This document shows positions 3,001-64,000 of a stretch of DNA of 64,000 nt, one piece after another. The position numbers were made by a program, and so were the translations under genes. Origin of the DNA: Hyalangium minutum (GTDB taxonomy: Bacteria; Myxococcota; Myxococcia; Myxococcales; Myxococcaceae). The notes beneath the pieces are model-generated. The model was not told where the DNA came from, did not search any database, and worked only from the letters and a program-made list of their open reading frames with translations. The stretch is taken from assembly GCF_000737315.1 (NCBI RefSeq), contig NZ_JMCB01000005.1, positions 372,001 to 436,000 on the forward strand, given 5' to 3'. The number at the start of each line of letters is the position of its first letter. The stretch's first letter is position 1.

Positions 3001-6000
3001 TCGAGGCCGTCCTGTCCCTGCCTCCCACGGATCCGGACAGCCCTCGCGAGCAAGAGCTGCTCTCGCTGACCCGGAAGGCCGCGACTGCTGCGGTGCGCTC
3101 GGGTCGCACGGACTCCGCGCGCCGCCTGCTGGCGCAGTACTGCAGCCAGGCTCCGGCGGACCTCGATGCTCAGCTGGAGCTGGCGGTGCTGCACCGGAAG
3201 GTCGGCGCAAAAGAGGCACTGGCGGATCTGCTGACCACGCTGTGGCCCCGTCTCTCCGGAGAGGCCCAGCGCAATGCCCGCCGCGAGCTGGCGGAGCTGG
3301 CCCTGGCCCTGGGCCGTCCCAACGAGGCCATCTCCGCCCTGCGAGCACTGCTCGTCGAGGAGCCGAGAGACTTGTGGGCCGCGCAGTCCCTCCTGTCGCT
3401 GCTCCCGCCGCCGGGCGCGGGCACCGAGGAGCAGGAGGCCGAGCGGCTCACCCTGCTCAGCACCCAGATCTCCGCCGCCGAGGGCGAGGACCGCGCCGAG
3501 CTGCTGGCCCGCCGTGCCGCGCTCCACCGCTCCGCGGGCCGCGTCATCGCCGCACGGGATGACTACTCCGAGGCCGCCCGCCTCGCCCGTCGTCCCGCGC
3601 CGCTGCTGATCTCCCTGGCCGAGCTGGCCCGTGAGGCTGGCGACGAGTCCGCCGAGCTGGCCGCGTGGCGCAAGGCCGTGGCCTCCGAGTCGAGCCTGGG
3701 CGAGCGCGCGCGGGAGCGTCTGCTCGCGATCGCCGCCTCGCTCATGGAGAAGGATGCGCGCGCCGAGGCGCGGGAGGCGCTGCGGGCCGCCGTCGCGCTG
3801 GAGCTCCCTGCCACCGAGCGCTGTGAGGCCTTCTTCTCCCTGGCCCTGCTCGCCCGCCGGGATGGGCAACCGGACGCCGAGGCCGAGGCGCTCGCGGAGG
3901 CCGCGCGCCAGGGCCCTGTGTCTCGCCGCGTGGAGGCGCTGCTCGCCCGCGCTGCCCTGCTGGAGCAGCACCAGAAGCGCGCCGAGGCCGCGCAGAGCCT
4001 GCACGAGTCGCTCACCCTGGCACCCCGTCACCCGGGCGCCACCGCCGCGCTGCAGCGCGTGCTCCGCGAGCTGGAGGACTGGGCGGGCCTGGCCGCGCTC
4101 CTTGCCTCCGAGGCGCCTCATGCGCCCGCCGCGACCGCTGCCTCGCTGTACTCCGAGCTCGCGGGGCTGTACCTCGATCGGCTGAACCAGCCCGGCCCCG
4201 CCGAGGCCTCGCTGCGTGAGGCCCTGCGCCTTGCTCCGGATGACGCGAAGGTGCGCCGCCGGCTCGTCTCGCTCATCGTCGAGAACGGCGAGCTGCTGGA
4301 GGCCGCCTCGCTGCTGGAGGCCGCCGCCGAGAACGCCGAGCCCGAGGAGGCCGCTGCCTTTCTGCGCGAGGGTGCTGCCCATGCCCGCGCCGCCTCCGAG
4401 CCCGAGCGCGCCTTGCGGATGGTCCGCCGTGCCCACACGCTTCTGTCTGCGGACGGCGCGGATCTGGAGGTGCTCACCGAGCTCCTCTTCCTGCACGGTG
4501 ATGTGAAGGAGGCCCTGCCGCTCCAGGAACGGCTCGCGTCCTCCGTGGACTTCGCGAAGGCTCCGGAGCAGGCGGAGGCCGCGTTCCGCCGTCTGGGTGA
4601 GCTGGCCGAGCGCGCGGGAGACACGAAGCGCGCGGTGAGGGCATGGCGCCGGCTGACCGAGCAGAGCCCTCGGGACGAGCTGGCCGTCCAGCGGCTCGCC
4701 GCGCTCCTCGAGAAGCAGGATCCCCGGAGCGCGTTCGAGGTGCTCGTTACCCACGCGCGGTCGCTGCCTCCCTCGCAGGATGCGGTGGAGCGGCTCGTGG
4801 CGCTGTCGGAGCGGGCCCGCGCCTCGCTGGCGGATGTGGACGTGGCCGCCTCGCTGCTGGCCCGTGCGGCGGAGATCTCCGCCCAGCCGCTGCCGCTGCG
4901 CCAGAAGCTCGCCGCGCTTTACCGGGAGCAGGGCCGCACCCAGGAGCTGCTCGCGGAGCTGCGCCGGATCGCCGCGCTCAGTGTTCAGCTTGAGGAGCTG
5001 GACGCGGCCGTCACGGCCTACAGTGAGGAGGCCCGGCTCGCCGAGGACGTGGGCCGGATCGATGAGGCCCTCGAGGCGCTTAGCGAGCTGAGGGACTTGC
5101 TGGAGTCCCAGGAGAAGCCCGCCGCTGCTGCCGCGCACGAGCGCCGCCGCGCCGAGCTGCTGCGGGATGTGAAGCTGGACCTCCCTGCGGCTGAGGAGTC
5201 CCTGGAGCGCTCGTTCCGGCTCAACGCGGACCTCGAGACGACGCAGATGGGCGAGTCGCTCGCGGCCCGCCGCGAGGATGCGGCCACGCAGGCGCGCTGG
5301 CTGGAGCGCATGCTGCCGCTGCAGGCCGGAGCGCACGAGCAGGGTGGGGTGCTCCTGCGGCTGGCGCGGCTCTACCTGGGCGTCCTGGCGGACTCGGCCA
5401 AGGCGGAGGACTTCCTCCGGGACGCGCTGCGCCGCGACCGCTCCCTGGCCGAGGCCCAGAAGCGCCTGGAGGAGCTGCTGGAGCACGACGGGCGCATGGC
5501 CGAACTGGCCGCCTGGTACGAGGACTCCGCCGCGCAGGAGTCGGACACGGGACGCCGTGCGCTGCTGCTGCGCCGCGCCGCCACGCTCTACCGGGATCGC
5601 GCGGGCCGTCCCGAGGCCGCTGCCGCCGCGCTGCTCGCCGCGCGTGCCGCTGAGCCGGATGATCTGGAGCTCACCGCTCAGGCCTCCGACCTGCTCCACG
5701 AGGTGGGCCGCAGCGAGGACGCGGCGGAGTTCGACGCGCTCCTGCTGGAAGCCGATCCGTTCCGCGAGCCTGTCTTCACCCGCCACCGGGACTTCCTGGT
5801 CGAGACGGCGGACCCCCAGTCGCTCGCGGCGCTGATGCTGCGCCGGGCAGAGCGTCAGCAGCCCGCGGAGGCTGCCGAGAGCTACCTCATTGCCGCCCAG
5901 GCGTTCCGCGACGCGGGCGCCCGGGAGCGCGCGCTCCTGTGCGAGGACCGGGCCTTCGAGCTGGCTCCCTCCAACACCCAGGCCTTCGAGCTGCTGCGTG

Positions 6001-9000
6001 AGCGGATGTCCGGAGACGTGCGCCGCTTGGCGGAGCTGCTGGCCCAGCGCGCTGCCGCCGTGTCTTCCGAGCAGGCGCTGCCGCTGCTGCGCGAGCGTGC
6101 CAACCGCCTGCTGCAGGCCGGTGAGTCGCTCCTGGCCGCCGAGGCCTTCGATGCGTACCTGGCCCAGGCCGGTGAGGACGTGGAGGCTCTGTCCGCGCGC
6201 GCCGAGCTGGCGGCTCAGGGCGGTGGTCCGATCGCGGCCCAGCCTTACGATCGGCGGTTGCTGGCCGTAGAGGCCTCGCTGCCCGTGCCCCTGCGCGCGC
6301 AGACCTGGCTTCGGCTGGGGCATGCCTCGCTCGCCTCGGGCGCGTACCGGGACGCGGCGGATGCCTACGAGGCCGTGGTCTCGCTGGACCCCGAGGGCGA
6401 GCGCGGCAGGGAGGCGCTGTCGCTGCTGACGGAGGCGTACTCGCGCACGGGCGACACCGAGGGCCTCTATCGCACGTCGCTCCTGCTCGCGCGCAAGGCC
6501 GAGGGGCCGACGGCCGAGGTCCTCTACCGCCGTGCCGCGGACCTCTTCGATGATCCGAAGGCGGCCATCGACGCGCTGCTGCCGCTGACGCGCATTCGCC
6601 CGGCGGACTCCACCCTCATCGATCGCGCGGTGGAAGGCCTGCGTGCCCTGGGCCGTCACTCGGAGCTGCTCGACGTCTACGAGGCCGGTGCCACGGCGGC
6701 GGGAGGCTCTCGCGCCGCGGAGCTGCTGCTGGCCGCCGCGAACGTGGCCGACACCGAGCTGTCCGAGCCCGAGCGCGCCTGGACGCTGCTGCTGCGGGCC
6801 GCGGAGGCAGACCCCTCGAACGAGGCGGCGCTGCGCAAGCTCGTGGAGGGCCTGCGCCAGCGCGGTGACAACGCGCGCCTGCTGGAGGCCCTGCAGCGGC
6901 TGGTCGAGAAGACGAAGGACTCGGACGAGGCCTCGCTGATGAGGCTGGAGATCGCCTCGCTTGCTCGCGCTGCCGGTCAGGACGAGCTCGCCCGCGACAT
7001 GCTGGAGGCGGTGGTGGAGCGGGGCGCCTCGGGCTCTGGCTATGGCGACGCGCTCGAGGGGCTGGAGCCGCTGCTGGAGGACATGCCCTCCCGCCGCGCA
7101 GAGGTCCGTGCGGCCCGGGCCGAGCTCGCCGAGGGCGCGGCTCAGGCGGAGCTGCTCGTCCTGGCGGCGACGGACTTCGAGACCGCGGGCCGGATTCCTG
7201 ATGCGGTGAAGGCGGCGAAGGCTGCCGCGGCCCTCGCGCCCGAGGTGCCCACCCTGCGGTTGCTGGCGCAGCTGTACCGCACCTCGGGAGAGACTCCGCG
7301 CGCGGCCAAGGCCCTGCTGCTGGCGGTTCGTGCCGCCACGGCCGAGGAGAAGCCCCAGTTGCTGCTGGAGGCCGCCGAGCTCTGGGAGCAGGCCGGAGAG
7401 AAGGCCGAGGCCCTGGAGGTCACCGAGCGCATTGCCTCCGAGACACCGGGGGCGCAGACGCCCGCCGAGCTGGCCGAGCGCTTCCTGCGGCTCGGGGCTC
7501 CGGCCCGGGCGGTCGCCGTGGGCTTCGGGCCCGCGATGAAGGCGGGAGAGTCCGCGCAAGCTCTGGCCCTGGCGGACAAGGCAGGGGACTCGGCGCGCGT
7601 GCGCGAGGCGCTCTGGGCGCTCGTGGCGGCGCCAGAGGTGGCTGCCTCGCACGTGGACAGACTCGTGGAGGCGTTGCGCGCCGAGGACGAGCGCGAAGGG
7701 CTGCTGCGGCTGGCGGACCTCCGCGCCGAGCGCGACGACGAGCTCGCGGTCACGCTGCGAGGAGAGGTGCTCGATGCGGAGCAGGCACCTGTGGAACTGC
7801 GCCTGAGCGCTTTCGACGCGCTGGCCTCGGGCCCGGACTTCGACACCCGGCTCACGAGTCTGCTGCCAGGAATCGGCAAGCTGCCGGAGAAGCTCTCCGA
7901 GGCGGTGCTCGTCCGAGTCCGGGTGCTGCCCACCGAGGAGAAGCTCGAGGCGCTGGGCGCCGTGGCGGAGGGCTGGCCGGAGCGCCGTGCGGCCTTCCTG
8001 CGCGAGCGCCTCCAGTTGGAGCGTGTCGAAAACCGCAACGAGGATGCCGAGCACACCCTGTCCCAGCTTGTCGAGGGCGAGACGGACACTTCGGCGCGCG
8101 TGGCCCTGCGGCTGGAGCTGGGCGAACTGCTGCTGACGAACGCCCGGAAGGCGCGGGCGCGGGACATCTTCGAGCGCACCCTGGCGGAGGACGCCACGTG
8201 CCTGCCGGCGGTGAAGCACCTGCTGGCGCTCTACAACGAGAAGGATGACGCCGAGGCCTTCGTTCAGCTGGCCGGGCGCCTGGAGTCCCTGGCGGGCGCC
8301 GAGGCGGTGGAGCCCTACCGCGAGCGCATGGCAGATGCCTACGAGGCACTCCAGCGGCCGGGAGACGCGGCGGCCCAGCTCGTGCTGTTGCCCGAGACGC
8401 CCGAGCGGCTCCAGCGGCGCGTGCGGCTGGCGGTGGATCGCGGCCTCACGGGCGAGGCGCTGCAGCTGCGCGAGCGGCTGACGGAAGAGCCCTCGGTGCT
8501 GGAGTCCATCCTCCGGGGTTACCTGGACGCGCAGCTCATCCCGTTCGCGGTGAAGCTGGCCGAGCGGCTCCTGTCGCGGGAGGCCCTCTCGCTCGAGGCC
8601 ACGCGCCTGGTGGCCGAGCGGCTCGCTCCCTCGCACGAGGGCGCCAGTCTGGCCGTGCGCCTGTGGCCGGGGCTGCTGAAGGAAAAGACCATCGATATCG
8701 ATGGGTGGACGCTGTACGCGGAGGCCCTGCGTCAGCTTGGCCGGAACGAGGCCGCCGAGCGCGTGGATGGCATCGCCGCGGCGCTGTCCGCCAGCGAGTC
8801 GCCTGCTCCCTCGGCGCACGTCATGCCGTTGCCCCCGCCGGGTACCTTCCGCCACCCCACGCCCTCGGGCGCGGTGCCTGTGACGGAGGAGACGCTGCCC
8901 CGGCTGTACGCAGCGCTCCGGCCCACGCTGAAGAAGCTGGGCGCGGGCAACCCGCAGCTGCTGCTGGATCCTTCGGGAGGGGTGGAGGCGTACCTCGCCA

Positions 9001-9317
9001 GCCCGGACGAGCTGGTGCTGGGAGCAGGGGCTCTGGGGTGCTTCGGCCCGGTGGAGCTGAGCTACCTTTGCGCGCTGGCGCTGAGCTTCGGCGAGAAGGG
9101 CATTGCGCTCGTGAAGCCGGGCTCGGCCGAGGGTCTGGAGCAGGCGGCGGTGGAGGCCTTCCGCGCGGTGCCAGCCTCGCTGGCCGCGGGGCGGGTGCTG
9201 GCGCGGCTGGACCCGGACATGCGCGGCGGAGACCCGAGCGACGTGGACGAGGGGGCGGTGCTGTCCGCCAACCCGGCCTTCCGCGCGGTGGCCCTCACGG
9301 TGCTCGAGCTCGTGTAG
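3..9317 (+). CDS. Giant TPR/alpha-solenoid protein (>3100 aa), 5'-truncated by the window edge
   Basis: The frame is open from position 3 (GFLELTVDADLVARK...) to TAG at 9317. It contains many TPR-like helical hairpins (e.g. A..YQQALEL.., A..AYAQAFPL.., ..HLEAALALEPRD). There is a beta-rich N-terminal region and a degenerate M48-peptidase-like C-terminal region. Confidence 0.85.
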   Translation, partial: GFLELTVDADLVARKIGELAGRLAGIEDLKLHFRPGYVEGQARLQGPERTPITFKVAFDGDGEKLALYIYDVRLYGFSPTASVQVPGIIASAVSALGLLPEMEVQGATGFTTRVLPELCRLASVTRGFKMPELDNARLSAAEVSSKGLRLRFASGGLPPPSAPDDELLMTLEGARAFAEPEALIAQGRLADAREAYLQSGDAQDAHPFAAERLLSLLVADPQAHDLALDVAASLLRRRDKSPAALWGEAVVRERRGEGARAAERYLALSALSRRTSEEAAAFFAAEAAARCSRDTAPAVAVKALHELLGLRPDHLPSLKALARASDQAKDRAGAVRAYRRLAALTRDPAEAADAHVHLAQLCAQTEDDIAGARLHCEAALRLAPDQPDALLLLGELCHRDGEHLRALKALDRLREVALARHELDRVGQANLLAGRVWEEGLKQLDNALLRYREAVTLMPGSPEPLFAAGRVAEGLGKVQEALADYQQALELAGPAPRSESVRKAAHSSHHAMARLARTKLGDPARARDHLEAALALEPRDLTALEELIPYFRATGRALELAEALEKAAAVYEEPVKRANLWAEAGELYRGRLQQPEKAERLLLSAIEADPDNKPALEAMLALAEARRDGGLLTRCLSALARLTPEPKERAQKYRRLAVAARDLTFDLELAVQALQEVLKAEPGDLPSLGELCTLQRKRSDMAGLAFALEERARVAEAQGDKRLASSALRELAGVLEARLGRIGEALVAMEKAARLAPDPAVLLDLADLSLRCERPEHARAALETLLASLPRTAAPERLADIRARLGRACELLGDREGAIAAYAQAFPLRRLDDALAARLEALYTEVGETRELAELWGTRAQALVAAERTVEAAPLFLKSARLLLVRGEKPGALLRLSAAIEADPQGPMAGEVLDLLAELELERGEKLEAAKLYARKAALLADIRAGAKLLYRASLLSAGTTREEAFLAESLEKDATFAPARMRRGELRLPTDPRGALEDLEAVLSLPPTDPDSPREQELLSLTRKAATAAVRSGRTDSARRLLAQYCSQAPADLDAQLELAVLHRKVGAKEALADLLTTLWPRLSGEAQRNARRELAELALALGRPNEAISALRALLVEEPRDLWAAQSLLSLLPPPGAGTEEQEAERLTLLSTQISAAEGEDRAELLARRAALHRSAGRVIAARDDYSEAARLARRPAPLLISLAELAREAGDESAELAAWRKAVASESSLGERARERLLAIAASLMEKDARAEAREALRAAVALELPATERCEAFFSLALLARRDGQPDAEAEALAEAARQGPVSRRVEALLARAALLEQHQKRAEAAQSLHESLTLAPRHPGATAALQRVLRELEDWAGLAALLASEAPHAPAATAASLYSELAGLYLDRLNQPGPAEASLREALRLAPDDAKVRRRLVSLIVENGELLEAASLLEAAAENAEPEEAAAFLREGAAHARAASEPERALRMVRRAHTLLSADGADLEVLTELLFLHGDVKEALPLQERLASSVDFAKAPEQAEAAFRRLGELAERAGDTKRAVRAWRRLTEQSPRDELAVQRLAALLEKQDPRSAFEVLVTHARSLPPSQDAVERLVALSERARASLADVDVAASLLARAAEISAQPLPLRQKLAALYREQGRTQELLAELRRIAALSVQLEELDAAVTAYSEEARLAEDVGRIDEALEALSELRDLLESQEKPAAAAAHERRRAELLRDVKLDLPAAEESLERSFRLNADLETTQMGESLAARREDAATQARWLERMLPLQAGAHEQGGVLLRLARLYLGVLADSAKAEDFLRDALRRDRSLAEAQKRLEELLEHDGRMAELAAWYEDSAAQESDTGRRALLLRRAATLYRDRAGRPEAAAAALLAARAAEPDDLELTAQASDLLHEVGRSEDAAEFDALLLEADPFREPVFTRHRDFLVETADPQSLAALMLRRAERQQPAEAAESYLIAAQAFRDAGARERALLCEDRAFELAPSNTQAFELLRERMSGDVRRLAELLAQRAAAVSSEQALPLLRERANRLLQAGESLLAAEAFDAYLAQAGEDVEALSARAELAAQGGGPIAAQPYDRRLLAVEASLPVPLRAQTWLRLGHASLASGAYRDAADAYEAVVSLDPEGERGREALSLLTEAYSRTGDTEGLYRTSLLLARKAEGPTAEVLYRRAADLFDDPKAAIDALLPLTRIRPADSTLIDRAVEGLRALGRHSELLDVYEAGATAAGGSRAAELLLAAANVADTELSEPERAWTLLLRAAEADPSNEAALRKLVEGLRQRGDNARLLEALQRLVEKTKDSDEASLMRLEIASLARAAGQDELARDMLEAVVERGASGSGYGDALEGLEPLLEDMPSRRAEVRAARAELAEGAAQAELLVLAATDFETAGRIPDAVKAAKAAAALAPEVPTLRLLAQLYRTSGETPRAAKALLLAVRAATAEEKPQLLLEAAELWEQAGEKAEALEVTERIASETPGAQTPAELAERFLRLGAPARAVAVGFGPAMKAGESAQALALADKAGDSARVREALWALVAAPEVAASHVDRLVEALRAEDEREGLLRLADLRAERDDELAVTLRGEVLDAEQAPVELRLSAFDALASGPDFDTRLTSLLPGIGKLPEKLSEAVLVRVRVLPTEEKLEALGAVAEGWPERRAAFLRERLQLERVENRNEDAEHTLSQLVEGETDTSARVALRLELGELLLTNARKARARDIFERTLAEDATCLPAVKHLLALYNEKDDAEAFVQLAGRLESLAGAEAVEPYRERMADAYEALQRPGDAAAQLVLLPETPERLQRRVRLAVDRGLTGEALQLRERLTEEPSVLESILRGYLDAQLIPFAVKLAERLLSREALSLEATRLVAERLAPSHEGASLAVRLWPGLLKEKTIDIDGWTLYAEALRQLGRNEAAERVDGIAAALSASESPAPSAHVMPLPPPGTFRHPTPSGAVPVTEETLPRLYAALRPTLKKLGAGNPQLLLDPSGGVEAYLASPDELVLGAGALGCFGPVELSYLCALALSFGEKGIALVKPGSAEGLEQAAVEAFRAVPASLAAGRVLARLDPDMRGGDPSDVDEGAVLSANPAFRAVALTVLELV

Positions 9318-11263: not shown

Positions 11264-11297
11264 AAAGGCCCCAGGCTCGCGAGAACCCGGGGCCTTT
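11264..11297. terminator. Bidirectional intrinsic terminator between convergent ddpX and the S8 protease gene
   Basis: Stem AAAGGCCCC / GGGGCCTTT with an A-run on the left and a T-rich tail on the right. Confidence 0.8.
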
Positions 11298-11325
11298 CTC
11301 TTTCACAGCAACGGCTGGGGCGCGC

Positions 11326-12615
11326 TTACTGCGCGGAGGACGGGGTGGACGCCGGCGTGCCGCCGCCGATGAAGCCCATGTAGCCCAGCTTGTTCGGCGA
11401 GCACTTGCCCGGCGAGCCCACCTTGTTGGGCGTCGAGTTGTCCAGCAGCGCCTTGGCCACGTCGTTCGGCGAGGCGTTCGGGTGGGCGCCCAGGTAGAGC
11501 GCCGCCATGCCCGCCACGTGCGGAGTGGCCATGGACGTGCCGCTGATCGTCTTGTTGTCCGCGTCGCCCGTGTTCCACGACGAGGTGATGTTGTGGCCCG
11601 GCGCGAAGATGTCCACGCAGCCGCCAAAGTTGGAGAAAGTGGCCCGCGTGTCGTCCTTCGTTGTCGCGCCCACGGTGATGGCCTCGGCCGTGCGCGACGG
11701 CGAGGTGTTGCACGCGTCCTTGTTGTCGTTGCCCGCCGCCAGCGCGTACACCACGCCTGCGGCCACGGACCGGCGAACCGCGTCATCCAGCGCCCGGTCC
11801 GCGCCGCCACCCAGGCTCATGTTGGCCACCGCGGGCAGCTGCCGGTTGCTCGTCACCCAGTCGATGCCCGCAACCACGCCGGCCGTCGAGCCCGAGCCCG
11901 AGCAGCTCAGCACGCGCACCGCGTGCAGCAGCACGTTCTTCGCCACGCCGAAGGTGCTGCCACCCACCGTGCCCGCCACGTGCGTGCCGTGGCCGTTGCA
12001 GTCGTTGCCCTTCTGCCCGTCGCCGATGGCGTCGTAGCCCACGTCCGCGCGCCCGCCGAACTCGCTGTGCGAGATGCGGATGCCCGTGTCGATGATGTAC
12101 GCGTGCACGCCCTTGCCCTGGGCCGCGGACGTGTACTTCGTGTCCAGCGGCAGGTCGCGCTGATCAATCCGGTCCAGGCCCCACGTGGCGTTCGACTGCG
12201 TGTCGAACACCGTCAGCACCTGGTTCTCCTGCACGTACGCCACCTCGCCGTCGGTGGACATGGCCTGGGCCTGGGCCTCGGTCATCTTGCTGGCGAAGCC
12301 ACGCAGCGCGTTCTCGTACGTGGCGAACGAAGTGCCGCCGTACTTGCCCGTGAGCTGCTGCGCCAGCGGCGCCACCGGCTTCGGCTGCACGCCCGGCGCC
12401 GGATCCTTCAGCACCACCACGTACTCGCCGGAGATGGGCTTGTCGACCTTGACGAACTTCTCCTGCGCGGCCTGCGCCGCCGTCAGCGTCACGCCACTGG
12501 GGCAGTCGCCCGGCGGTTTTCCGTCGTCTGGAGGCGTCGGCGACTTCGGGCATGCCGTCAGCAGGGATACGGCCATGCAGGACACAGCCAGCTTCGCTAC
12601 GGTGAAGACTCTCAT
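11326..12615 (-). CDS. S8 subtilisin-like serine protease (aqualysin/proteinase K-like) lipoprotein with I9 prodomain
   Basis: Lipobox LTAC. Catalytic triad motifs IIDTGI, NGHGTHVAG and SGTSMATPHVAG. Prodomain YVVVLK...GFASKM. Confidence 0.92.
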   Translation of the reverse strand: MRVFTVAKLAVSCMAVSLLTACPKSPTPPDDGKPPGDCPSGVTLTAAQAAQEKFVKVDKPISGEYVVVLKDPAPGVQPKPVAPLAQQLTGKYGGTSFATYENALRGFASKMTEAQAQAMSTDGEVAYVQENQVLTVFDTQSNATWGLDRIDQRDLPLDTKYTSAAQGKGVHAYIIDTGIRISHSEFGGRADVGYDAIGDGQKGNDCNGHGTHVAGTVGGSTFGVAKNVLLHAVRVLSCSGSGSTAGVVAGIDWVTSNRQLPAVANMSLGGGADRALDDAVRRSVAAGVVYALAAGNDNKDACNTSPSRTAEAITVGATTKDDTRATFSNFGGCVDIFAPGHNITSSWNTGDADNKTISGTSMATPHVAGMAALYLGAHPNASPNDVAKALLDNSTPNKVGSPGKCSPNKLGYMGFIGGGTPASTPSSAQ

Positions 12616-54080: not shown

Positions 54081-54109
54081 GCTGAGAGGTGGGGTGATTC
54101 ACGCGGGGA

Positions 54110-54712
54110 ATGGGTGGCTGCTACACTGGGAGAATGCTTCCCCGCGCTCTCGTCCCCACCGTGCTCTTCGCTGCGGTCCTCTGGCCGCTGCGGGCGCTCG
54201 CGTGCATCAACTCGATGGACGCCAGCTCCATCTTCACCGCCCACACCGTCTGGACTGACTTGATCGTCTGGACCGTGGGGGCGGTGTTCTTGAATCAAGT
54301 CGTCATCGCGAATGTGAGAGCCCCCGCCGTCGAGGGACAGCCTGCGCCCTCTCGGTTCCGCAAGGCCTTCTTCCTTCTCGTGGGCGCTTGCCTCGTCCTG
54401 GTGATGGGTGTGGTGTCGGCCGGTGGGCCGCTCCTCAACTTCGGCGAGATCAAAATGTCCACGTGCCTGTTCGACCGCAGATTCCTGCTGCTGATGATGG
54501 GCAGTCCCGCCGTGGTCTTCGTTCTGCACTCCGTGCTCTTCCAGCGGCTGAGCCGGTGGTTGTTTAGCGGAGACAGGCTTGTCACCCTCGTAACCCTGGT
54601 GGTCTCCTCGGTCTTGCTGGCGGTAGGGGTGGACATGGTGCGTGAGTCGATCCTCCTCCCCAAGCTCTGCGGAGCCACGTCGTACCTCCTCTTCGGGCAC
54701 AGCCAGTACTGA
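54110..54712 (+). CDS. Hypothetical multi-pass membrane protein
   Basis: Signal-like N-terminus and four or five hydrophobic segments. Confidence 0.6.
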   Translation: MGGCYTGRMLPRALVPTVLFAAVLWPLRALACINSMDASSIFTAHTVWTDLIVWTVGAVFLNQVVIANVRAPAVEGQPAPSRFRKAFFLLVGACLVLVMGVVSAGGPLLNFGEIKMSTCLFDRRFLLLMMGSPAVVFVLHSVLFQRLSRWLFSGDRLVTLVTLVVSSVLLAVGVDMVRESILLPKLCGATSYLLFGHSQY

Positions 54713-54733
54713 GTCGCTGCCTGGAGCCCCGCC

Positions 54734-55984
54734 GTGGCCTCGCGCACCCTCTCGCTTGCCTACGTGGTTGGCACCGCGTTCCTGCTGGGGACAGTGGGGA
54801 GCGGCTATGTCGTGGCCCGTGACGCTGATGTGCTGGCCCTGCGCCTGCCCACGCGAGTCCTGGCTCCCACGAAGCACACGATCGAGACGCCTCGGGACGC
54901 CGTGGAGCACTTCCAGTGCAACCGGTGCCACGCGGTGCCCGGCCTCGAGCCCGTGTCGGCGCCCTTGGCTGAGAACTGTGTGACGTGTCACCAGGCCATT
55001 ACCGCCGGGCGGCTCGACCTCTGGTATCAGGAGGCGCACGTCGAGAAGTGGAAGCAGCACCTCACGCACCTGGTGAGGACCCCGGATCTTGGCTCGCTCG
55101 GCCAGCGGGTCAAGCGCAGTTGGCTCATTGGCTGGCTTCAGGCGCCGCACGCGGTGAGGCCCCTGTACGGGGCCACGATGCCCAAGCTGAAGATGAGTCC
55201 ACGGGAGGCCGAACTCATCGCCGACTTCCTCGCGGTGACCGAGGAGGAGTCAGGGGAGCCTCCGCGAGGGAATGCGGCGGCCGGGCGAGCGCTCTACGAG
55301 AAGAGCCAGTGCGCCACCTGTCACTACCGCGGGGACTCTCCGCTTGCGTCCCTGCGCTATGGCTCGCCGGAGTTCCTGAGTCCTTCGGCTCGGAGGCGCG
55401 CTCCGGACCTGAAGTATGTGCGCAGCCGCATGTCGCTCTCGCAGCTGCGGAGCTGGCTGGTGGAGCCTCAGCGGATCCTCCCCGATACCGAGATGCCTTC
55501 CTTTTCGTTCACGCCTCAGCAGGTCGAAGATCTGGTGACCTTCCTGAGCGAGCCGCTGCCCGAGACGGGGGCCGTGCCGCGTCCCGCGTACAAGCCCCGC
55601 CTGCTCGGGCGCGAGGTGCACTACCCCGAGGTCGCGGAGAAGCTCTCGCGCCACCTGTGCTTTCACTGTCACTCCGACAGGAACCGGCCGGGTGACCAAG
55701 GGCCAGGCAACACCGGTGGGTTTGGCTACAGCGGCGTCTCGCTCGATCTCGCCACGCGGGAGGGCATCCTCCGGGGCGTCAAGCGCGATGGCCAGTTCCG
55801 AGGGTTCCCGGATCGGCTGGAGGATGGGACGCCTCGGCTGATTGCCAGCCTCCTGGCCCGCCACGTTGAGCTGGACGGGCACTACGGCTCGGCGGTGATG
55901 GGCATGCCCCTGGGCTTCCCTCCCATTCCCGATGAGGAGATCGATCTCATCTCCACGTGGATCGAGCAAGGCGCGCCCGAATAG
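54734..55984 (+). CDS. Multiheme c-type cytochrome (four CxxCH), membrane-anchored
   Basis: CNRCH, CVTCH, CATCH and CFHCH; Met-Pro ligand segments (TMP, EMP, GMP); N-terminal TM helix. Confidence 0.85.
   Translation: MASRTLSLAYVVGTAFLLGTVGSGYVVARDADVLALRLPTRVLAPTKHTIETPRDAVEHFQCNRCHAVPGLEPVSAPLAENCVTCHQAITAGRLDLWYQEAHVEKWKQHLTHLVRTPDLGSLGQRVKRSWLIGWLQAPHAVRPLYGATMPKLKMSPREAELIADFLAVTEEESGEPPRGNAAAGRALYEKSQCATCHYRGDSPLASLRYGSPEFLSPSARRRAPDLKYVRSRMSLSQLRSWLVEPQRILPDTEMPSFSFTPQQVEDLVTFLSEPLPETGAVPRPAYKPRLLGREVHYPEVAEKLSRHLCFHCHSDRNRPGDQGPGNTGGFGYSGVSLDLATREGILRGVKRDGQFRGFPDRLEDGTPRLIASLLARHVELDGHYGSAVMGMPLGFPPIPDEEIDLISTWIEQGAPE
55954..55980 (+). repeat. Left 27-bp direct repeat (3' end of the cytochrome gene)
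   Basis: CACGTGGATCGAGCAAGGCGCGCCCGA followed by ATAG; identical to 58800-58826. Confidence 0.95.
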
Positions 55985-56074
55985 GCGGAGCCTCGGGTCC
56001 CCGGAACCCAGCGAGATGAGGCTGGTGGGAACGCCCCACCAAGTTGGAACGCGTCTCACCGAGTCGGGCGCTGT

Positions 56075-57841
56075 TCAGGGCCAGTAATCCACAGGCCTGC
56101 CGGCGGTGCTGTTGCCTGTTCTCGCGGCACCGTCCTTCAGTTCCTCGGAGCTCATCTCGACGATGAAACAGGCGGGAAGCTCTTCCTGTTGCGGCAACTT
56201 CACTCGGTCATATTTCACGATGATGGAGCCCGGCTTGCCGGTGAGGGTCTTCTCGGGCACGACGTAGACCTTCCCGCCGAAAAACCGCGTCCCTGGGGGC
56301 GCGACCTCGCGCTGCCTGCCGGTCACCCCTTTCGGAACAACGCCGACCACCGTGTCGCCCACGCGATGCCAAACGTCATCGTCCTCACCGTATCGGTCAT
56401 CCATCATCAGGAAAAACTGCTCTGACTCTCGCCAACCCAGCTGCTTTCGCGTTGCGACCGCGCCCTCTGGGCAGGTGAACGGATCAGGCCGGACCTGGGC
56501 TCCGGTGCATCCGGCCGCGATGGCACATCCGACCGTTAGGGCTTTGCGCAGGTCCGAGCCGGGGGAGGTCTTCTGGCGGCGTGCTTGCTTCGGATCTTCG
56601 GGGGGCTGGGTCTTCACGGGTGAACCTTCCTCCTCTTGGGGGACGTATGCCGTCTCTCTCCCGGGCATGGGCTCGGGGGCAGGTGACATATCAGGGGCAG
56701 CCGTCTGGGGCGGCGCGGGCGGGGCGGCACTTGAGAGCGTCGGCACACCGGAACGCATCCAGAGCGTGACGAGAGCGCCGAGCATGACGGCAGTGACCGT
56801 GCCGGCCGCGAGCACCTTCCCCGAGCGGCGAGCGCCGGCAACCGCCCTTTGGCGGAACGCACGCAGACGGCCCCAGCGGCCCGGGTTCCGCTCGACCGGC
56901 TCGCCGACCGGCTCGGGTCTGCGCTGCTCCGAGGGGGGATGTGCGGGCACCCGGTACTCCGCTCCCGGGTGTGCCGCGAGCTCCACCAGCTCGCGGTGAA
57001 GGGCATCGGTATCCACCGGGCGCTTGGCGGGATCGCGTGACAGCAGGTCGTCCACGAGGTCGCCGAGCGCTTCGGGAACGCGAGCGTTCAGACCTCGCGC
57101 GGGTGAAGGCGGGCCGAAGGGGCTGTTCAGCGTCTCCCGCGGGCGTGCCTCTGTCGGCCGCGGATCCGTCAGCAGCTCGTAGAGCATCGCGCCAACGGCG
57201 AAGAGCTCGTCGGCCACCTGGAAGGCGTACCGCGCCCGGTGCTCGTCTCTGTGCTCGCGCAGGAACTTGAACTGCTCGGGCGCGCGGAACCGATCCGTTC
57301 CAGGGGGCAGGCCGCTCTCGGTCAAGTCCGCCGCTTGCGTGTGGGTCGCGCAGCTGAAGTCGATGATGACCGGCTCGCCGTCGCTCTTTCGGATCAGCAC
57401 GTTGGACAGCTTCAGGTCCCGGTGAAGGATGCCCTTGCTGTGCATGTACTTCAGGGCGGAGGCAAGCTTCGCGAAGACGCGCAGGATCTCCTGCAGCGTG
57501 GGGTGCTTCTTTTCCTGCCACTCGCCCAGCGTCCAGCCATCGACGTACTCCAGCGCAATATACATATTGCCCGCTTCGGCGTAGCCATACCCGAGCGGCT
57601 GGATGATGTTTGGGTGGCCCTGTTCCATCAACAGCAGCAGGACCGTCAATTCACGCATCGCCCTCACATGCGTCTGCATGGCGTCGCCGCTGGCATCGCG
57701 GTGCCGTGCCACCTTGAGCGCTCGGAGCTGCTCATCCTTCTGCACCAGGTAGACGACCGCGGAGCCACCGTCGCCGAGTTCCCTCAAGACGTGCCAACCG
57801 TCAATCATGGCGCCAGAAGGCAGCCGGAGAAGGGTGGTCAT
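56075..57841 (-). CDS. Membrane Ser/Thr protein kinase with Pro-rich linker and VirB10-like C-terminal domain
   Basis: GDGGSAVVY, RALK, HRDLKLSN, DFS (in place of DFG) and FRAPE motifs; TM segment at about 56756-56815. The start overlaps the DUF2381 stop. Confidence 0.9.
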   Translation of the reverse strand: MTTLLRLPSGAMIDGWHVLRELGDGGSAVVYLVQKDEQLRALKVARHRDASGDAMQTHVRAMRELTVLLLLMEQGHPNIIQPLGYGYAEAGNMYIALEYVDGWTLGEWQEKKHPTLQEILRVFAKLASALKYMHSKGILHRDLKLSNVLIRKSDGEPVIIDFSCATHTQAADLTESGLPPGTDRFRAPEQFKFLREHRDEHRARYAFQVADELFAVGAMLYELLTDPRPTEARPRETLNSPFGPPSPARGLNARVPEALGDLVDDLLSRDPAKRPVDTDALHRELVELAAHPGAEYRVPAHPPSEQRRPEPVGEPVERNPGRWGRLRAFRQRAVAGARRSGKVLAAGTVTAVMLGALVTLWMRSGVPTLSSAAPPAPPQTAAPDMSPAPEPMPGRETAYVPQEEEGSPVKTQPPEDPKQARRQKTSPGSDLRKALTVGCAIAAGCTGAQVRPDPFTCPEGAVATRKQLGWRESEQFFLMMDDRYGEDDDVWHRVGDTVVGVVPKGVTGRQREVAPPGTRFFGGKVYVVPEKTLTGKPGSIIVKYDRVKLPQQEELPACFIVEMSSEELKDGAARTGNSTAGRPVDYWP

Positions 57842-58704
57842 CGCTTGCCCTCCGCTACGGCGGCCGGGAGTGTCACACTCGGAATCACAAGGCTCCGGCC
57901 GGTGTCGCCGAGTACTTCCAGGGCGAAGACCACGCCGGCACTCGCGGGCGGCTCGTCTGCCACCACAAGCACACCAACGGATTCCCCGGGTGCGATCGTG
58001 TCCCTTGCAGCCGTCACGCGAAGCACACGCAGCGCGACTCCCCCCTTGCCTGTCAACGTCGCACTGCGCGGCGAGAAGGGCGGGAGCCCGGCCCCGTTGC
58101 GTATACCGATGTTAAAGAGCACCCAACCGTTACCGCGATACGACACGCCCGGATACGCGGAGAGTCCGTGCCCATTGTCCGCCACGCGGTCGATGCCCCG
58201 GGTCTGCACACCGCGCGCATCCACGTAACCCATCCGCACGAAGTCTTCGGGCAGGGGGGCTGCGCGCTGCTCTTCGACCGGACAGACTGCCTTCGGCAAC
58301 TCGGGCCGCTTCACGTCGATCCGCGTGTCCACTTCGGCCGCGTCCATGACGAGCACGAACGCGGCCCGAGCGGGCGCCTTCCCATCCGCGAAGAACACCT
58401 CGAGCTCCTGGCGCTCGTCGGCCCGGTAATCGTCCACGGCTTGGACGATGATCGAGCTTTCACCGGCATCCCGAATCCGAATCCGCGACGGATCGACCGT
58501 GATCGTCTTCTTGAGGATCTGCGCGGGGAACCACAGCAGCGTCAGCGTGTCGGGCGAGACGCGGATCTCGGGCAGGGGCCCGGCAGGAGTGCCGGTGACC
58601 GTGACCGTCCGTTCTCGCTTCGCCCGACGCAAGTCCGCCTCGCCTCGCGCGGCGGTGCCCCAGAGGACCAGGAGCGCAAGGGCCAATCTACCAGGTTGTG
58701 GCAA
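57838..58704 (-). CDS. DUF2381-like (myxobacterial paralogous family) exported protein, VirB9/TraN-like
   Basis: AGGAGG precedes the TTG; signal peptide; EIRVSPDTLTLLWFP, EVFFADG..PARAAF.LV and IAPGES..V.V motifs. Family named from memory. Confidence 0.8.
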   Translation of the reverse strand: MPQPGRLALALLVLWGTAARGEADLRRAKRERTVTVTGTPAGPLPEIRVSPDTLTLLWFPAQILKKTITVDPSRIRIRDAGESSIIVQAVDDYRADERQELEVFFADGKAPARAAFVLVMDAAEVDTRIDVKRPELPKAVCPVEEQRAAPLPEDFVRMGYVDARGVQTRGIDRVADNGHGLSAYPGVSYRGNGWVLFNIGIRNGAGLPPFSPRSATLTGKGGVALRVLRVTAARDTIAPGESVGVLVVADEPPASAGVVFALEVLGDTGRSLVIPSVTLPAAVAEGKR

Positions 58705-58799
58705 GGGTGCGTGACCTCCTGGATGGGTACGCTACCATCGCCTACGCCTGTACAGTGCGCCTCAAGTGGAGGGGTCAAGGCGCCGTGCGCCCACCGACA

Positions 58800-58826
58800 C
58801 ACGTGGATCGAGCAAGGCGCGCCCGA
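58800..58826 (+). repeat. Right 27-bp direct repeat (displaced copy of the cytochrome 3' end)
   Basis: Identical to 55954-55980 and followed by GTAG; still reads TWIEQGAPE*. Confidence 0.95.
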
Positions 58827-58828
58827 GT

Positions 58829-58845
58829 AGCCCCGTGACGGGGCT
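58829..58845. terminator. Hairpin directly after the right repeat, before the convergent nucleotidyltransferase stop
   Basis: AGCCCCG-TGA-CGGGGCT, a perfect 7-bp stem with only a 3-nt loop. Confidence 0.55.
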
Positions 58846-59663
58846 CACGCGAGGAGGGCGCGCAGGCTTCCGGACAGGCCGCGCAGGCGGCGCAGCGCGC
58901 CCTCGTGGTCCCCGTCACCGATGTCCTTCCACAGTCCGAGCTGCGCCTCGGCCAGGCCCGCGATGGTGATGGGGTAGGTTGCGGCCTCGGTGACAGCGCC
59001 CTTCTCGTTGATCAAGTAGCGGCCGTTCAATGCAAACAGCACCTGGGCCAGGCAGCTCAGCGCCCGGTAGGCGCACCCCGCGATGTGCGTGCGCTCGCCG
59101 CGCCGGGCCGCGAGCTCGGCATTGCTGATGGCGAAGTCCACCTCCCAGCCGAAGCGGAAGATGAGCTCCTTCTTCAGCGCCTCTGGATAGGGCCACGTCT
59201 GGCCCTTCAGCTCGGCGATGCGGCCGAGCGGATCGAAGAGCGGCTGGCACGTGGCGACCTCTCCCATCCAGATGGCCGAGCAGAAGCCGTGGGGGTGTCC
59301 CGTCTGGTAGTTCATCGAGAAGCGGCCCTGCCGTGCCTCGGCGATGACGTCGCGCACACGGCCCAAGTCCCGGTAGATCAGATCCACCTTGGTGCCGCCA
59401 ATGTGGAGCCAGCCGCCACCGTTGATCCAGGGCCCCCACTCTCCAAACTGCGTCACCGTCTCGGAGGGATCATCGACCACCGGGACGATGGCCGAGCGCA
59501 GTGCCTCGACGTCGAAGGGCGCGTCCGGCTCGTAGTAGATTCCGACGTCGTAGTCGGACAGGGGGCCCGCGGTTCCTCGCGCTCGCGAGCCTCCGAGCAC
59601 GAGTGCGGACACGCCTGGAAGGGGTTGGAGGGCTTCGACTACACGGCTCAGGATGGGGTCCAA
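58845..59663 (-). CDS. Minimal nucleotidyltransferase-domain protein with helical C-terminal domain
   Basis: LGGSRARG....SDYDVGIYY (GS, DxD) and KVDLIYRD (third Asp). Confidence 0.85.
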   Translation of the reverse strand: MDPILSRVVEALQPLPGVSALVLGGSRARGTAGPLSDYDVGIYYEPDAPFDVEALRSAIVPVVDDPSETVTQFGEWGPWINGGGWLHIGGTKVDLIYRDLGRVRDVIAEARQGRFSMNYQTGHPHGFCSAIWMGEVATCQPLFDPLGRIAELKGQTWPYPEALKKELIFRFGWEVDFAISNAELAARRGERTHIAGCAYRALSCLAQVLFALNGRYLINEKGAVTEAATYPITIAGLAEAQLGLWKDIGDGDHEGALRRLRGLSGSLRALLA

Positions 59664-59675
59664 GGGGCTCTCCGA

Positions 59676-60644
59676 TCAGCCGCGCAGGCTCGACAGGTCC
59701 TCGCGCTTGGGCAGGGCAGCATAGGAGCCCGGCCGGGTCACCGTGAAGGCGCCACAGCGCGTGGCGAACTCCAGCGCCTCGCGCAGACGCCCCTCTTCCT
59801 GGGCCCAGGAGGCGAGGGTGCCACGCGACACTTTCGCGTCCACCAGGGCGGAGATGAGACCGCCGATGAAGGCATCTCCCGCCGCCGTGGTGTCGACGAC
59901 CTGGACCGAGGGGGGCTTCACCCGCAGGCGTGTGCGCGCCGTCACCGCCGTCACTGGCTCACCGCCATCGGTGATGACCACCAAGACGGCCCCGGCCGCC
60001 AGCCGCGCCTGGAGGTAGCGCTCCTCTGACTCCGCTCCGCGCAGCAGCTCCAGCTCTTCGCGCGACAACTTGATGAGCTGTGCGCGGTCGAGCAGGGAGT
60101 TGACTCGGACCCGGTCCACGAGATGGTCCGGCCACAGGTTGGCGCGCAGGTTGGCATCCACGCTGACGAGTGCGCCCGCGGCCGCCGCCTTGTCGGCCAC
60201 CGTGATGGTCGTAGCGGTGATGGCCTCCTCCGTCAGCGTGTTCGAGCACAGGTGGAGGATGGAGCTGCCGTCGAACAGTCCCTCGGGCAGGTGCTCGGGA
60301 CGGTAGAGCAGGTCCGCGGAGGGGGGCCGGTAGAAGTCGAAGCGGCGCTCACCCGAGGCATCCCGGGACACGAAGGCCAGGGCCGTCTTCGCTTCCAGGG
60401 TGCGCGCCACGTGGCGCACGTCCACGCCGTGCGAGGCCAGCTCCTCGAGGATGAAGTCCCCGAAGCGGTCGCGCCCCAGCATGCCGATGAACTGGCTCGG
60501 CACGCCCAGGCGTGCGCAGGCCACGGCCACGTTGGCCGGAGCCCCTCCCGCGTAGGGGGTGAAGGTCTCCTGCGCGGTGGAAGAGCCCAGGCGGCTGGAC
60601 AGCATGTCGACCAGGGCTTCTCCGAAGGCGATGAGGCGTGTCAT
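59676..60644 (-). CDS. PfkB family carbohydrate kinase (fructokinase-like)
   Basis: GEALVD, GGAPANVA, DANLR..LW and DTTAAGDAF.GG motifs. Confidence 0.92.
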   Translation of the reverse strand: MTRLIAFGEALVDMLSSRLGSSTAQETFTPYAGGAPANVAVACARLGVPSQFIGMLGRDRFGDFILEELASHGVDVRHVARTLEAKTALAFVSRDASGERRFDFYRPPSADLLYRPEHLPEGLFDGSSILHLCSNTLTEEAITATTITVADKAAAAGALVSVDANLRANLWPDHLVDRVRVNSLLDRAQLIKLSREELELLRGAESEERYLQARLAAGAVLVVITDGGEPVTAVTARTRLRVKPPSVQVVDTTAAGDAFIGGLISALVDAKVSRGTLASWAQEEGRLREALEFATRCGAFTVTRPGSYAALPKREDLSSLRG

Positions 60645-60659
60645 GGGCGTGCCGTCTCC

Positions 60660-62159
60660 TCAGGCCTGGGCTATGGGCGGGGACTCGCGTGCCGGATCGA
60701 GCGACTGGAGCGTGGCCACCACGCCTTGCTCGTCCAGCTGCTTGCGCAGCTTCAGGTACAGCTCCACGAAACCCGGGTGCGCCGGAAGCTTCGAGCCAAC
60801 CACTTCCTTGAGCGACAGGAGCGTCATGGGCGAGGTGCTCTTCATCACCGGCTCGAGCTGGGTGCGCGCGTTGGGCTCGTGGATGGGGTACGCCTCGCCT
60901 TTCTCGTCCTTGCCCTGGAGGTAGCGGTCATAGGCGGCGAGGAGGAACGCGACGCGGTGGTAGGGGCGGCCGCCGTCGAGAATGGCGTGCACGGTGGGCA
61001 GCAGGAAGCCAGGGATCTTCGAGCCTCCGTCGCTGCACAGGCGCGCGAGCTGATCGCTCACGGCGCGGTTGCCAAAGCGCTCGAGCAGCTTGTCCTTATA
61101 TGCGGGGATCTCCAGGCCGGGCAGGGACTTGAGCCACACGCCCGCGTCATGGTCCAGGAAGCCGCGCAGGTAGCTGAAGAAGAGCTTGTCGTGCAGCGCG
61201 TCGTCCACCCTGCGCAGCCCCGAGAGGAACGCGGGGTAGGAGAGCATGGTGTGCGTCGCGTTGAGCAGGCGGATCTTCGCCTCCTCGTAGGGCGACACGT
61301 CCTGCGTGAACATGACGCCCACGGCGTCCCACGCGGGGCGGCCGTTCGGGAAGTGGTCCTCGAGCACCCACTGGATGAAGTCCTCGCAGATGACCGGGGC
61401 GCTGTCGTCCACCTGGGTCAGCTCGCGCAGCTTCTTCCGGGCGGCGTCGTCCGTGGCGGGAGTGATGCGGTCCACCATGCCGTTGGGGAAGGCCACCTCG
61501 CGCTCGATCCACGCGGCGAGCTCGGGGTCACGCGCCTTGGCGAACGACACCAGCGCGCGCCGGGCCTGGTCGCCGTTGTGGCGCAGGTTGTCGCAGGACA
61601 GCACCGTGAAGGGCTTGATGCCCGCCTTGCGGCGCCGGGCCAGCGCCTCCACGAGGTAGCCGAACGCGCCCTGGGGCGAGCTGGGATGCTGAAGGTCGTG
61701 CGCGACGGTGGGGTGCTTCAGGTTGAAGGCGCCGTGCTCATCGAGCAGGTAGCCGCCCTCGGTGATGGTCAGCGACACGATGCGGATGTCCGGGTGGCTG
61801 AGCTTGTCGAGCACCGCTGCCGGGTTCTCCGGCGCGTAGAGGTACTCCACCATGCACTCGACGACGCGCGACACGTGCGAGCCGTCCGGCGCCATCTCGC
61901 TCACGGTGTACAGGCCGTTCTGCTTCTTCATGGCCGCGGCCATGGCGGCGTCCTGGGGCAGCAGGTTGATGCCGCAGATGCCCCAACCCTCCTGGCCGGG
62001 CCGCGCGAGGGCGCGGTCGGTGTAGATGGCCTCGTGCGCACGATGGAAGCCTCCCACGCCGATGTGGGCGATGCCGGCGCGCACCTTGCTCCGGTCATAG
62101 CCGGAGCGGATGACGGTGGAGGGCAGGCTCGAGAGGTGCGCCTGATCAAGGGTGTGCAT
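60660..62159 (-). CDS. Mannitol 2-dehydrogenase (long-chain)
   Basis: HIGVGGFHRAHEA, SLTITEGGY, LSCDNL, FPNGMVDRITP and KIRLLNATH motifs. Confidence 0.92.
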   Translation of the reverse strand: MHTLDQAHLSSLPSTVIRSGYDRSKVRAGIAHIGVGGFHRAHEAIYTDRALARPGQEGWGICGINLLPQDAAMAAAMKKQNGLYTVSEMAPDGSHVSRVVECMVEYLYAPENPAAVLDKLSHPDIRIVSLTITEGGYLLDEHGAFNLKHPTVAHDLQHPSSPQGAFGYLVEALARRRKAGIKPFTVLSCDNLRHNGDQARRALVSFAKARDPELAAWIEREVAFPNGMVDRITPATDDAARKKLRELTQVDDSAPVICEDFIQWVLEDHFPNGRPAWDAVGVMFTQDVSPYEEAKIRLLNATHTMLSYPAFLSGLRRVDDALHDKLFFSYLRGFLDHDAGVWLKSLPGLEIPAYKDKLLERFGNRAVSDQLARLCSDGGSKIPGFLLPTVHAILDGGRPYHRVAFLLAAYDRYLQGKDEKGEAYPIHEPNARTQLEPVMKSTSPMTLLSLKEVVGSKLPAHPGFVELYLKLRKQLDEQGVVATLQSLDPARESPPIAQA

Positions 62160-62174
62160 GGAGCAGCGGAGTCC

Positions 62175-63257
<1,083 letters not shown>

Positions 63258-63269
63258 GGACGTGTTCCG

Positions 63270-63998
<729 letters not shown>

Positions 63999-64000
63999 GA

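Follow-up and report, generated by a model that had tools for sequence, protein, structure and literature searches.

A duplicated cytochrome gene end beside a DUF2381/kinase segment in Hyalangium minutum, probably a scar of illegitimate recombination

In the myxobacterium Hyalangium minutum, the intact gene for a c-type cytochrome is followed by a 2.8-kb segment with two intact genes, one for a DUF2381 protein and one for a transmembrane Ser/Thr protein kinase. Beyond this segment, the last nucleotides (nt) of the cytochrome gene occur a second time, next to the end of a convergent nucleotidyltransferase gene. The arrangement lies in a 64-kb stretch of contig NZ_JMCB01000005.1 (JMCB01000005.1 in assembly GCA_000737315.1), referred to here as the window. 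An earlier note on this DNA had described 27-bp direct repeats, and these are exact: the 27-mer CACGTGGATCGAGCAAGGCGCGCCCGA has two perfect copies on the + strand, at 55954-55980 and 58800-58826, and no other exact direct repeat in the 64 kb is as long, the runner-up reaching 19 nt. With the stop codon included, the repeat measures 31 nt (55954-55984 and 58800-58830), of which 30 are identical. The sole mismatch makes the left copy end in GAATAG and the right copy in GAGTAG, and both encode TWIEQGAPE* (the asterisk denoting the stop), as the note had read them. No third match to the 27-mer was found in the window with up to three mismatches on either strand, nor any match in 100 dinucleotide-preserving shuffles, and allowing up to eight mismatches gave no third copy of the repeat, whether within the window or across the 5.7 kb of contig past its right end. 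The open reading frame (ORF) calls also bear out that the cytochrome ORF is kept intact beside the inserted segment (the cassette), and that the 2.8 kb holds no integrase, its two genes being those for the DUF2381 protein and the kinase.

What is the second copy? We assign a probability of roughly 0.6 to the reading that it is a dead 31-bp stub of the cytochrome gene, left by one illegitimate, non-site-specific recombination event. Such an event would have spliced a truncated piece of a DUF2381/transmembrane-kinase/second-kinase locus between the cytochrome and nucleotidyltransferase genes of H. minutum.

On the right side, the closest nucleotidyltransferase locus (L027) is 87% identical to the window at the nucleotide level, and the homology runs from 58831, the first base past the TAG of the stub, through the whole gene. 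The nucleotidyltransferase gene of L027 adjoins CCCCGTGACGATGC, which is homologous to the hairpin that follows the stub in the window, and the TGA there is the stop of a different convergent gene (gene X). Since L027 has the hairpin beside its nucleotidyltransferase gene, the hairpin belongs to the 3' flank of that gene. The cassette-family homology ends at 58797 and the L027 homology starts at 58831, so that each border of the stub is a breakpoint (58797/58800 and 58830/58831). The earlier note had correctly described the right copy as followed by a hairpin and the convergent nucleotidyltransferase stop, the hairpin in fact overlapping both the TAG of the stub and the TCA stop. That this is the undisturbed ancestral junction, as the note also held, is doubtful, because the L027 homology starts right after the TAG with a different neighbor, and because the flank of the left copy looks native. 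Orthologues of the nucleotidyltransferase are 73-86% identical, and most are about 7 amino acids (aa) longer at the C-terminus (279-281 versus 272 aa). The short C-terminus is common to L027 and is therefore older than the cytochrome stub. In the search for the ancestral junction, these orthologues led no further than L027, which alone was informative; the context in H. rubrum is wholly different. The tail of gene X shares GATCGAGC with the cytochrome tail, a match too short to build on.

The cassette, for its part, is a piece of something larger. Homology to the cassette family extends in the window from about 56006 to 58797. The closest relative, on a metagenome contig (L018), is 85% identical at the nucleotide level across 56029-58742, with a rate of synonymous substitution (dS) of about 0.3; the kinases are 81% identical in amino acid sequence, at a ratio of nonsynonymous to synonymous rates (dN/dS) of 0.35. 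L019, L020 and L021 are 77% identical, the match to L019/L021 covering 56056/56075-58797, while two paralogues in H. minutum itself (L024 and L025) reach 73-78% and a locus of H. versicolor (L026) 78%. Since L018 is nearer than the paralogues of the same genome, the inserted DNA would have come from another genome or locus and would not be a recent local duplicate. The order of the two genes and the 4-nt overlap of the DUF2381 gene with the kinase start are common to L018, L019, L021, L025 and L026. A third gene, for a soluble kinase of about 380 aa (kinase2), directly follows the transmembrane kinase gene in L018, L019, L021, L024, L025 and L026, that is, in every cassette relative whose contig reaches far enough, which is all but the short L020. 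The window cassette has no kinase2 and thus holds two of the three genes of a conserved DUF2381-kinase-kinase2 locus. Moreover, L019 and L021 stay homologous to each other past both of the window breakpoints. Because the homologues run past both insert ends, the insert looks like an arbitrarily cut intergenic fragment of a larger locus, with no ends of its own.

These comparisons bear on two further claims of the earlier note. A mobile cassette with attL/attR-like ends is hard to reconcile with ends that are arbitrary cut points in a three-gene locus and that have no terminal inverted repeat (best local match 6 nt, p=0.95). The suggestion that such insertions explain how kinase-DUF2381 paralogues multiply also loses ground: no direct repeats of at least 18 nt, and no flanking gene-end repeats, bracket the unit at the four loci scanned (L018, L019, L021 and L024), which include a paralogue from the same genome, and the window cassette is the only one examined with a flanking gene-end repeat. 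An orphan kinase2 gene in H. minutum was considered as a trace of the donor site; none was found at high identity, the kinase2 genes sitting in complete three-gene units.

At the left junction, 21 nt (GCGGAGCCTCGGGTCCCCGGA) separate the cytochrome stop from the start of the cassette homology. These are most likely native cytochrome 3' flank, judging from a stop-anchored alignment to the post-stop flank of L001 (Archangium lansingense; p=0.0016 versus random 21-mers). Against the spacer between kinase and kinase2 that the cassette family conserves, no significant match was obtained (p=0.16-0.74), which leaves the idea that the 21 nt are a diverged cassette spacer unsupported. If the 21 nt are native, the cassette was joined 21 nt past the stop, and the repeats are not a simple target duplication around an insert. 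The flank of the right copy matches none of the cytochrome flanks of the relatives, and the right stub itself is identical to the cytochrome gene end of a metagenome locus (L022) at 31 of 31 positions. The features of the locus are collected in Table 1.

Table 1. Features of the H. minutum locus, in window coordinates.
Feature	Coordinates	Strand	Description
Multi-pass membrane protein gene	54110..54712	+	annotated start 54134, 192 aa; several hydrophobic segments
c-type cytochrome gene	54734..55984	+	416 aa, intact; Pfam Cytochrom_C 5.9e-13; ends TWIEQGAPE*
Left repeat copy	55954..55984	+	working end of the cytochrome gene, its last 31 nt (GAA TAG)
21 nt after left stop, GCGGAGCCTCGGGTCCCCGGA	55985..56005		most likely native cytochrome 3' flank
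Kinase 3' spacer	56006..56074	-	cassette-family homology, ending where kinase2 and its leader would start
Ser/Thr protein kinase	56075..57841	-	588 aa; Pfam Pkinase 4.2e-34, residues 16-284
DUF2381/TIGR02268 protein	57838..58704	-	288 aa; Pfam DUF2381 1.7e-48; TIGR02268 1.1e-56
Upstream (leader/promoter) region of DUF2381 gene	58705..58797	-	conserved in the cassette family; blastn to L019, L020, L021
CA dinucleotide	58798..58799		between end of cassette homology and stub; filler or diverged sequence
Right repeat copy	58800..58830	+	orphan 31-nt cytochrome 3'-end stub (GAG TAG), non-coding in context
Hairpin AGCCCCG-TGA-CGGGGCT	58829..58845		58829-58835 pairs with 58839-58845; loop TGA, 7-bp stem
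Nucleotidyltransferase-domain protein	58845..59663	-	272 aa; Pfam NTP_transf_2 2.2e-08; convergent with the stub

Relatives of the cytochrome were collected by protein-query scans of contigs, which gave 13 loci from myxobacterial genomes (L001-L013) and one from a metagenome (L022). The proteins are 74-89% identical to the H. minutum cytochrome at 12 of the genome loci, 61% at the 13th, from a Myxococcales metagenome-assembled genome, and 81% at the metagenome locus. All 14 end in T-W-[IL]-E-Q-G-[AS]-P-E-stop. The membrane protein gene just upstream, which has no Pfam or NCBIfam match, makes up a 1.9-kb module with the cytochrome gene and is conserved together with it in L001-L012 and L022. 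At none of the 14 loci does the gene end recur downstream (in 0.5-10 kb of flank for L001-L013 and 2.9 kb for L022), contrary to the expectation that this site would be used recurrently. Neither a nucleotidyltransferase gene nor a cassette adjoins the cytochrome gene in any of the 14, so none of them can be scored as an empty site, and the collections searched contained no genome close enough to show one. The closest loci, at 80-89% protein identity, have unrelated flanks, and a look-up of the exact proteins of the locus returned the source assembly only. The neighbors of the module differ in almost every relative's genome and are ordinary chromosomal genes. No integrase was found among the recurrent families downstream of the relatives' cytochrome genes (85 genes; the 25 commonest of 91 families), and on these grounds the idea that integrative elements favor the 3' end of the cytochrome gene as a hot spot was rejected.

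The module has an unusual distribution of its own. In five Archangiaceae genomes (L001-L005; Archangium, Vitiosangium and Cystobacter), the 1.9 kb (window 54100-55990; about 9350-11264 in L001-L005) are 94% identical at the nucleotide level, and the 10 kb on either side are unrelated between genomes. Homology extends 2-13 nt past the stop at one end and reaches about 50-85 nt ahead of the start at the other. Chromosomal gene pairs are not usually conserved in this way amid unrelated flanks, which hints that either the module or its surroundings are often relocated. The H. minutum cytochrome has a dN of 0.06-0.07 to the Archangium/Cystobacter group (86-89% aa identity) and 0.12 to H. versicolor (80%), a pattern that is uniform along the gene; it is thus nearer to Archangium/Cystobacter than to H. 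versicolor, and either the genus is not tight or the module was transferred. In L001 and L003, CCCGTGA(G) occurs about 19-28 nt past the cytochrome stop; it also stands directly after the TAG of the stub (58831-58838), in sequence homologous to the nucleotidyltransferase flank of L027. Per 30-nt flank, only about 6e-4 occurrences of CCCCGTGA are expected, and the motif about 20 nt past the stop in L001 and L003 was set aside as too short to build on.

How could a single event have produced the arrangement? The route that we tentatively favor is displacement of the 3' end by homology-facilitated illegitimate recombination. A relative would have supplied DNA with the cassette already positioned behind an intact end of the cytochrome gene and roughly 21 nt of its native flank. 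A homologous crossover inside the cytochrome module and an illegitimate join 31 nt before the resident stop would then have pushed the old gene end downstream as a stub. This would explain the native-looking left flank, the stub, the arbitrary ends of the cassette and the presence of a closer cassette relative in another organism. A second route, capture by direct end joining of a 2.8-kb fragment in a staggered break whose fill-in duplicated 31 bp, seems doubtful; it explains the tidy junctions of 0-2 nt but not the 21 nt. A third, a replication template switch by which the junction acquired a 31-nt copy of sequence from nearby, is improbable. By any of these routes, TWIEQGAPE* would have been regenerated through selection for a working cytochrome.

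Several points weigh against an illegitimate event, or against the displacement route in particular. Direct repeats around an insert, together with a restored ORF, are exactly what site-specific integration would produce as well. We infer the order of events from loci among which no pre-insertion allele was found. For displacement, the left flank is the one direct support, and its p-value is about 0.002 uncorrected and about 0.01 after six comparisons, from a short alignment. Sliding-window identity revealed no recombination switch-point in the cytochrome module, and a mosaic module was accordingly rejected as direct evidence of a crossover. Finally, no clear microhomology could be made out at either junction.

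The competing explanation that survives best takes the two copies as the attL and attR attachment (att) sites of a minimal integrase-less element, either cis-mobilizable or Xer-exploiting, which a recombinase acting in trans, from another place in the genome or from a visiting element, would have put into the cytochrome gene's 3' end, the ORF being restored by a gene end that the element carried. We consider this unlikely. It would account for 31-bp direct repeats exactly at the insert ends and for the restored ORF, and the element could have captured a gene end in an earlier host and carried it here as the left copy and its 21-nt flank. The length of the repeat is within the range of core sites of simple recombinases, and one metagenome relative of the cassette, L021, carries an 84-aa Phage_integrase fragment (7679-7933) about 2 kb upstream of its DUF2381/kinase unit. 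However, scanning nearly all the genes called in the 64-kb window against Pfam gave no domain of an integrase, transposase or other recombinase, and none appears in the precomputed Pfam assignments for 10 kb to either side of the locus, nor in the 5.7 kb of contig past the right end of the window. There is no room for arm sites, as the cassette-family homology reaches within 2 nt of the right copy, and on inspection the 31-mer has no clear dyad-symmetric core. The insert, moreover, is no self-contained unit with ends of its own but a truncated part of a larger, conserved locus, and the arrangement is not repeated at the other cassette loci examined or at the 14 cytochrome loci. Searches of the 64 kb for tRNA genes and Rfam RNAs were negative. 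No viral contig was found with the TWIEQGAPE* coding pattern, the DUF2381 protein or the cytochrome, which counts against a phage or provirus as carrier of the site or genes, and a phage-borne attP was rejected for this reason. An extended form of the same idea, in which the last 31 bp of the cytochrome gene would serve as a site for a trans-acting recombinase that shuttles small integrase-less DUF2381 and kinase cassettes into and out of gene ends, strikes us as quite improbable; if true, it would represent a route of cassette exchange that expands the kinase repertoire of myxobacteria.

An assembly artefact, in which a short repeat led to a false join and the true genome has an empty site and the cassette elsewhere or as a circle, is very improbable. 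The contig (JMCB01000005.1) is a draft, 31 bp is near common de Bruijn k-mer sizes, and the other resolution of a two-copy repeat would be exactly an empty site and a circle. On the other hand, even a mis-join would presuppose that the 31-mer exists in two genuine copies, each in its own context, so that the duplication would be real anyway. One base distinguishes the copies, a stretch of 31 bp is normally spanned by sequencing reads, and the 504-kb contig is otherwise coherent in gene content. Equally hard to credit is a stub kept by selection as a shared terminator or regulatory element of the convergent nucleotidyltransferase and DUF2381 genes: its TAG does lie within the 7-bp stem of the hairpin that separates the convergent genes, but the hairpin is present in L027 without any cytochrome stub, its folding energy is like that of shuffles (z between -1.0 and -1.3), the stub contains no promoter-like or terminator-like match, and no such sequence lies upstream at the other cassette loci examined.

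If the 31 bp are a scar of illegitimate recombination, as we favor, what known events does the locus resemble? A pattern of C-terminal or 3'-end displacement has been proposed for Rhs and type VI secretion system (T6SS) effector loci, including the effector-immunity arrays of Vibrio cholerae (PMC5361080), and experiments have shown homology-facilitated illegitimate recombination (PMC3240628). As in the Rhs and T6SS loci, a conserved anchor gene would have had a fresh end brought in, with the old end left downstream as an orphan stub, no dedicated recombinase and an arbitrary far junction. Unlike those loci, which have long displaced pieces, immunity genes and arrays, the present one has a single 31-bp stub and a cytochrome gene as its anchor, and the event is inferred from one genome without parental alleles.

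The element e14 and phage 21 reportedly integrate into the 3' end of icd in Escherichia coli (Hill, Gray and Brody, 1989, J Bacteriol 171:4083). The locus shares with the e14/icd case the 3' end of a housekeeping gene, a substitute end that keeps the gene intact, an original end that becomes a pseudo-copy on the far side, and direct repeats. It differs from e14 in having no integrase or excisionase of its own and no defined att sites or ends, and the duplicated segment at e14/icd is much longer, at about 165 bp, than the 31 bp here. Target-site duplication by transposons likewise leaves target sequence directly repeated on both sides of an insert. However, no terminal inverted repeats and no transposase domain were found here, and 31 bp is too long, such duplications usually being 2-14 bp. 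Cis-mobilizable elements (CIMEs) are recognized by att sites that they share with a known family of integrative and conjugative (ICE) or integrative and mobilizable (IME) elements, whose integrase mobilizes them (PMC5704250; ICEberg, PMC6323972). Like CIMEs and other att-flanked islands that lack an integrase, the locus has cargo within direct repeats and no recombinase of its own; unlike CIMEs, it has no ICE or IME family, recurrent site or integrase tied to it. Among the testable features of integrative elements and transposons, then, the locus shows direct repeats at both insert ends (30/31) and none of the others. It is best filed among recombination scars of a known kind, as a fresh example.

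The cassette itself appears to belong to the multi-copy family of Ser/Thr protein kinase (STPK)/DUF2381 genes of the Myxococcus xanthus type. Clusters of these genes in M. xanthus occur as several diverged copies per genome, which have been attributed to duplication, and have been linked to phase variation (PMC3986340; bioRxiv 10.64898/2026.08.28.747804). Those papers deal with expression and phenotype, whereas the topic here is the origin of a copy, and the present cassette is without the third gene.

The case would offer a clean, datable example of a paralogous DUF2381/kinase unit relocated without a dedicated mobile element, and of selection on a neighboring gene shaping which junctions survive. 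It also cautions that duplications of gene ends are not all att sites. A pure insertion, if that is what happened, predicts a relative with the order cytochrome-TAG-CCCCGTGACGGGGC-nucleotidyltransferase. Displacement, if true, predicts in addition a lineage with cytochrome-TAG-GCGGAGCC...-kinase and no stub. Excision or further copies of the core, if shown, would make the case much more interesting.

The two genes of the cassette are under purifying selection, as is the whole family (dN/dS 0.2-0.5). Their Pfam and NCBIfam matches score higher than the curated cut-offs. A low G+C content at third codon positions (GC3) was considered as a sign of foreign origin and rejected, GC3 values of 0.72-0.80 being a family-wide trait. 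The pair probably forms a periplasm-facing signaling system, with a secreted DUF2381 protein and a membrane kinase. By hydropathy the kinase has a single transmembrane segment (342-362), and its C-terminal domain of about 225 aa is presumed to lie outside the cytoplasm. The N-terminus of the DUF2381 protein is signal-peptide-like and is followed by two beta-sandwich domains, which also make up its AlphaFold model (predicted local distance difference test, pLDDT, 84.8). The best matches of this model in the PDB by Foldseek are VirB9-family subunits from the outer-membrane cores of type IV secretion systems (T4SS), namely a chain of the Legionella Dot/Icm T4SS (7muc_AH), a chain of the Xanthomonas T4SS core (6gyb_B), TrwF/VirB9 and CagX, with E-values down to 3.5e-9 and per-domain template-modelling (TM) scores of 0.5-0.66. 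We know of no functional link between DUF2381 proteins and VirB9.

Some relatives of the cassette have peculiarities of their own. The transmembrane kinase of L024 (8831-10583), one of the H. minutum paralogues, is called as two ORFs of 375 and 122 aa and is probably a frameshifted pseudogene; downstream of it (12454-12609) lies a tandem array of three copies, two of them identical, that recur about every 59 nt. In L019, L020 and L021, a conserved remnant ORF (...AYERFP[QE]IGG*) abuts the DUF2381/kinase unit. The genome of H. versicolor is full of DUF2381/kinase pairs. In its cytochrome locus (L006), the cytochrome gene is directly followed, at about 11277-12194 on the + strand, by a lower-GC gene with a GDSGGP motif and the look of a trypsin-like serine protease, and then by a distant DUF2381/kinase pair, of which the DUF2381 gene alone was submitted to Pfam. 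This pair downstream of a cytochrome gene was judged a coincidence: it is a distant paralogue (27% and 33% aa identity), and another gene lies between.

To the right of the locus, H. minutum differs from L027, the closest metagenome contig, by a 6.9-kb sugar-alcohol operon between the TfuA and nucleotidyltransferase genes (L016 3126-9995, corresponding to window positions about 59668-64000 and beyond; L027 351-402). It encodes a solute-binding protein, two permeases, an ABC ATPase, a mannitol dehydrogenase and a PfkB kinase. No repeats flank this operon, and insertion and deletion are both possible. With the differing neighbors of the cytochrome module in relatives and this operon without repeats, this part of the chromosome is a patchwork and very plastic. 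At the far left of the window, positions 36-9317 on the + strand are occupied by a single ORF of 3093 aa without other recognizable domain than the TPR/ARM-type repeats that are scattered along it.

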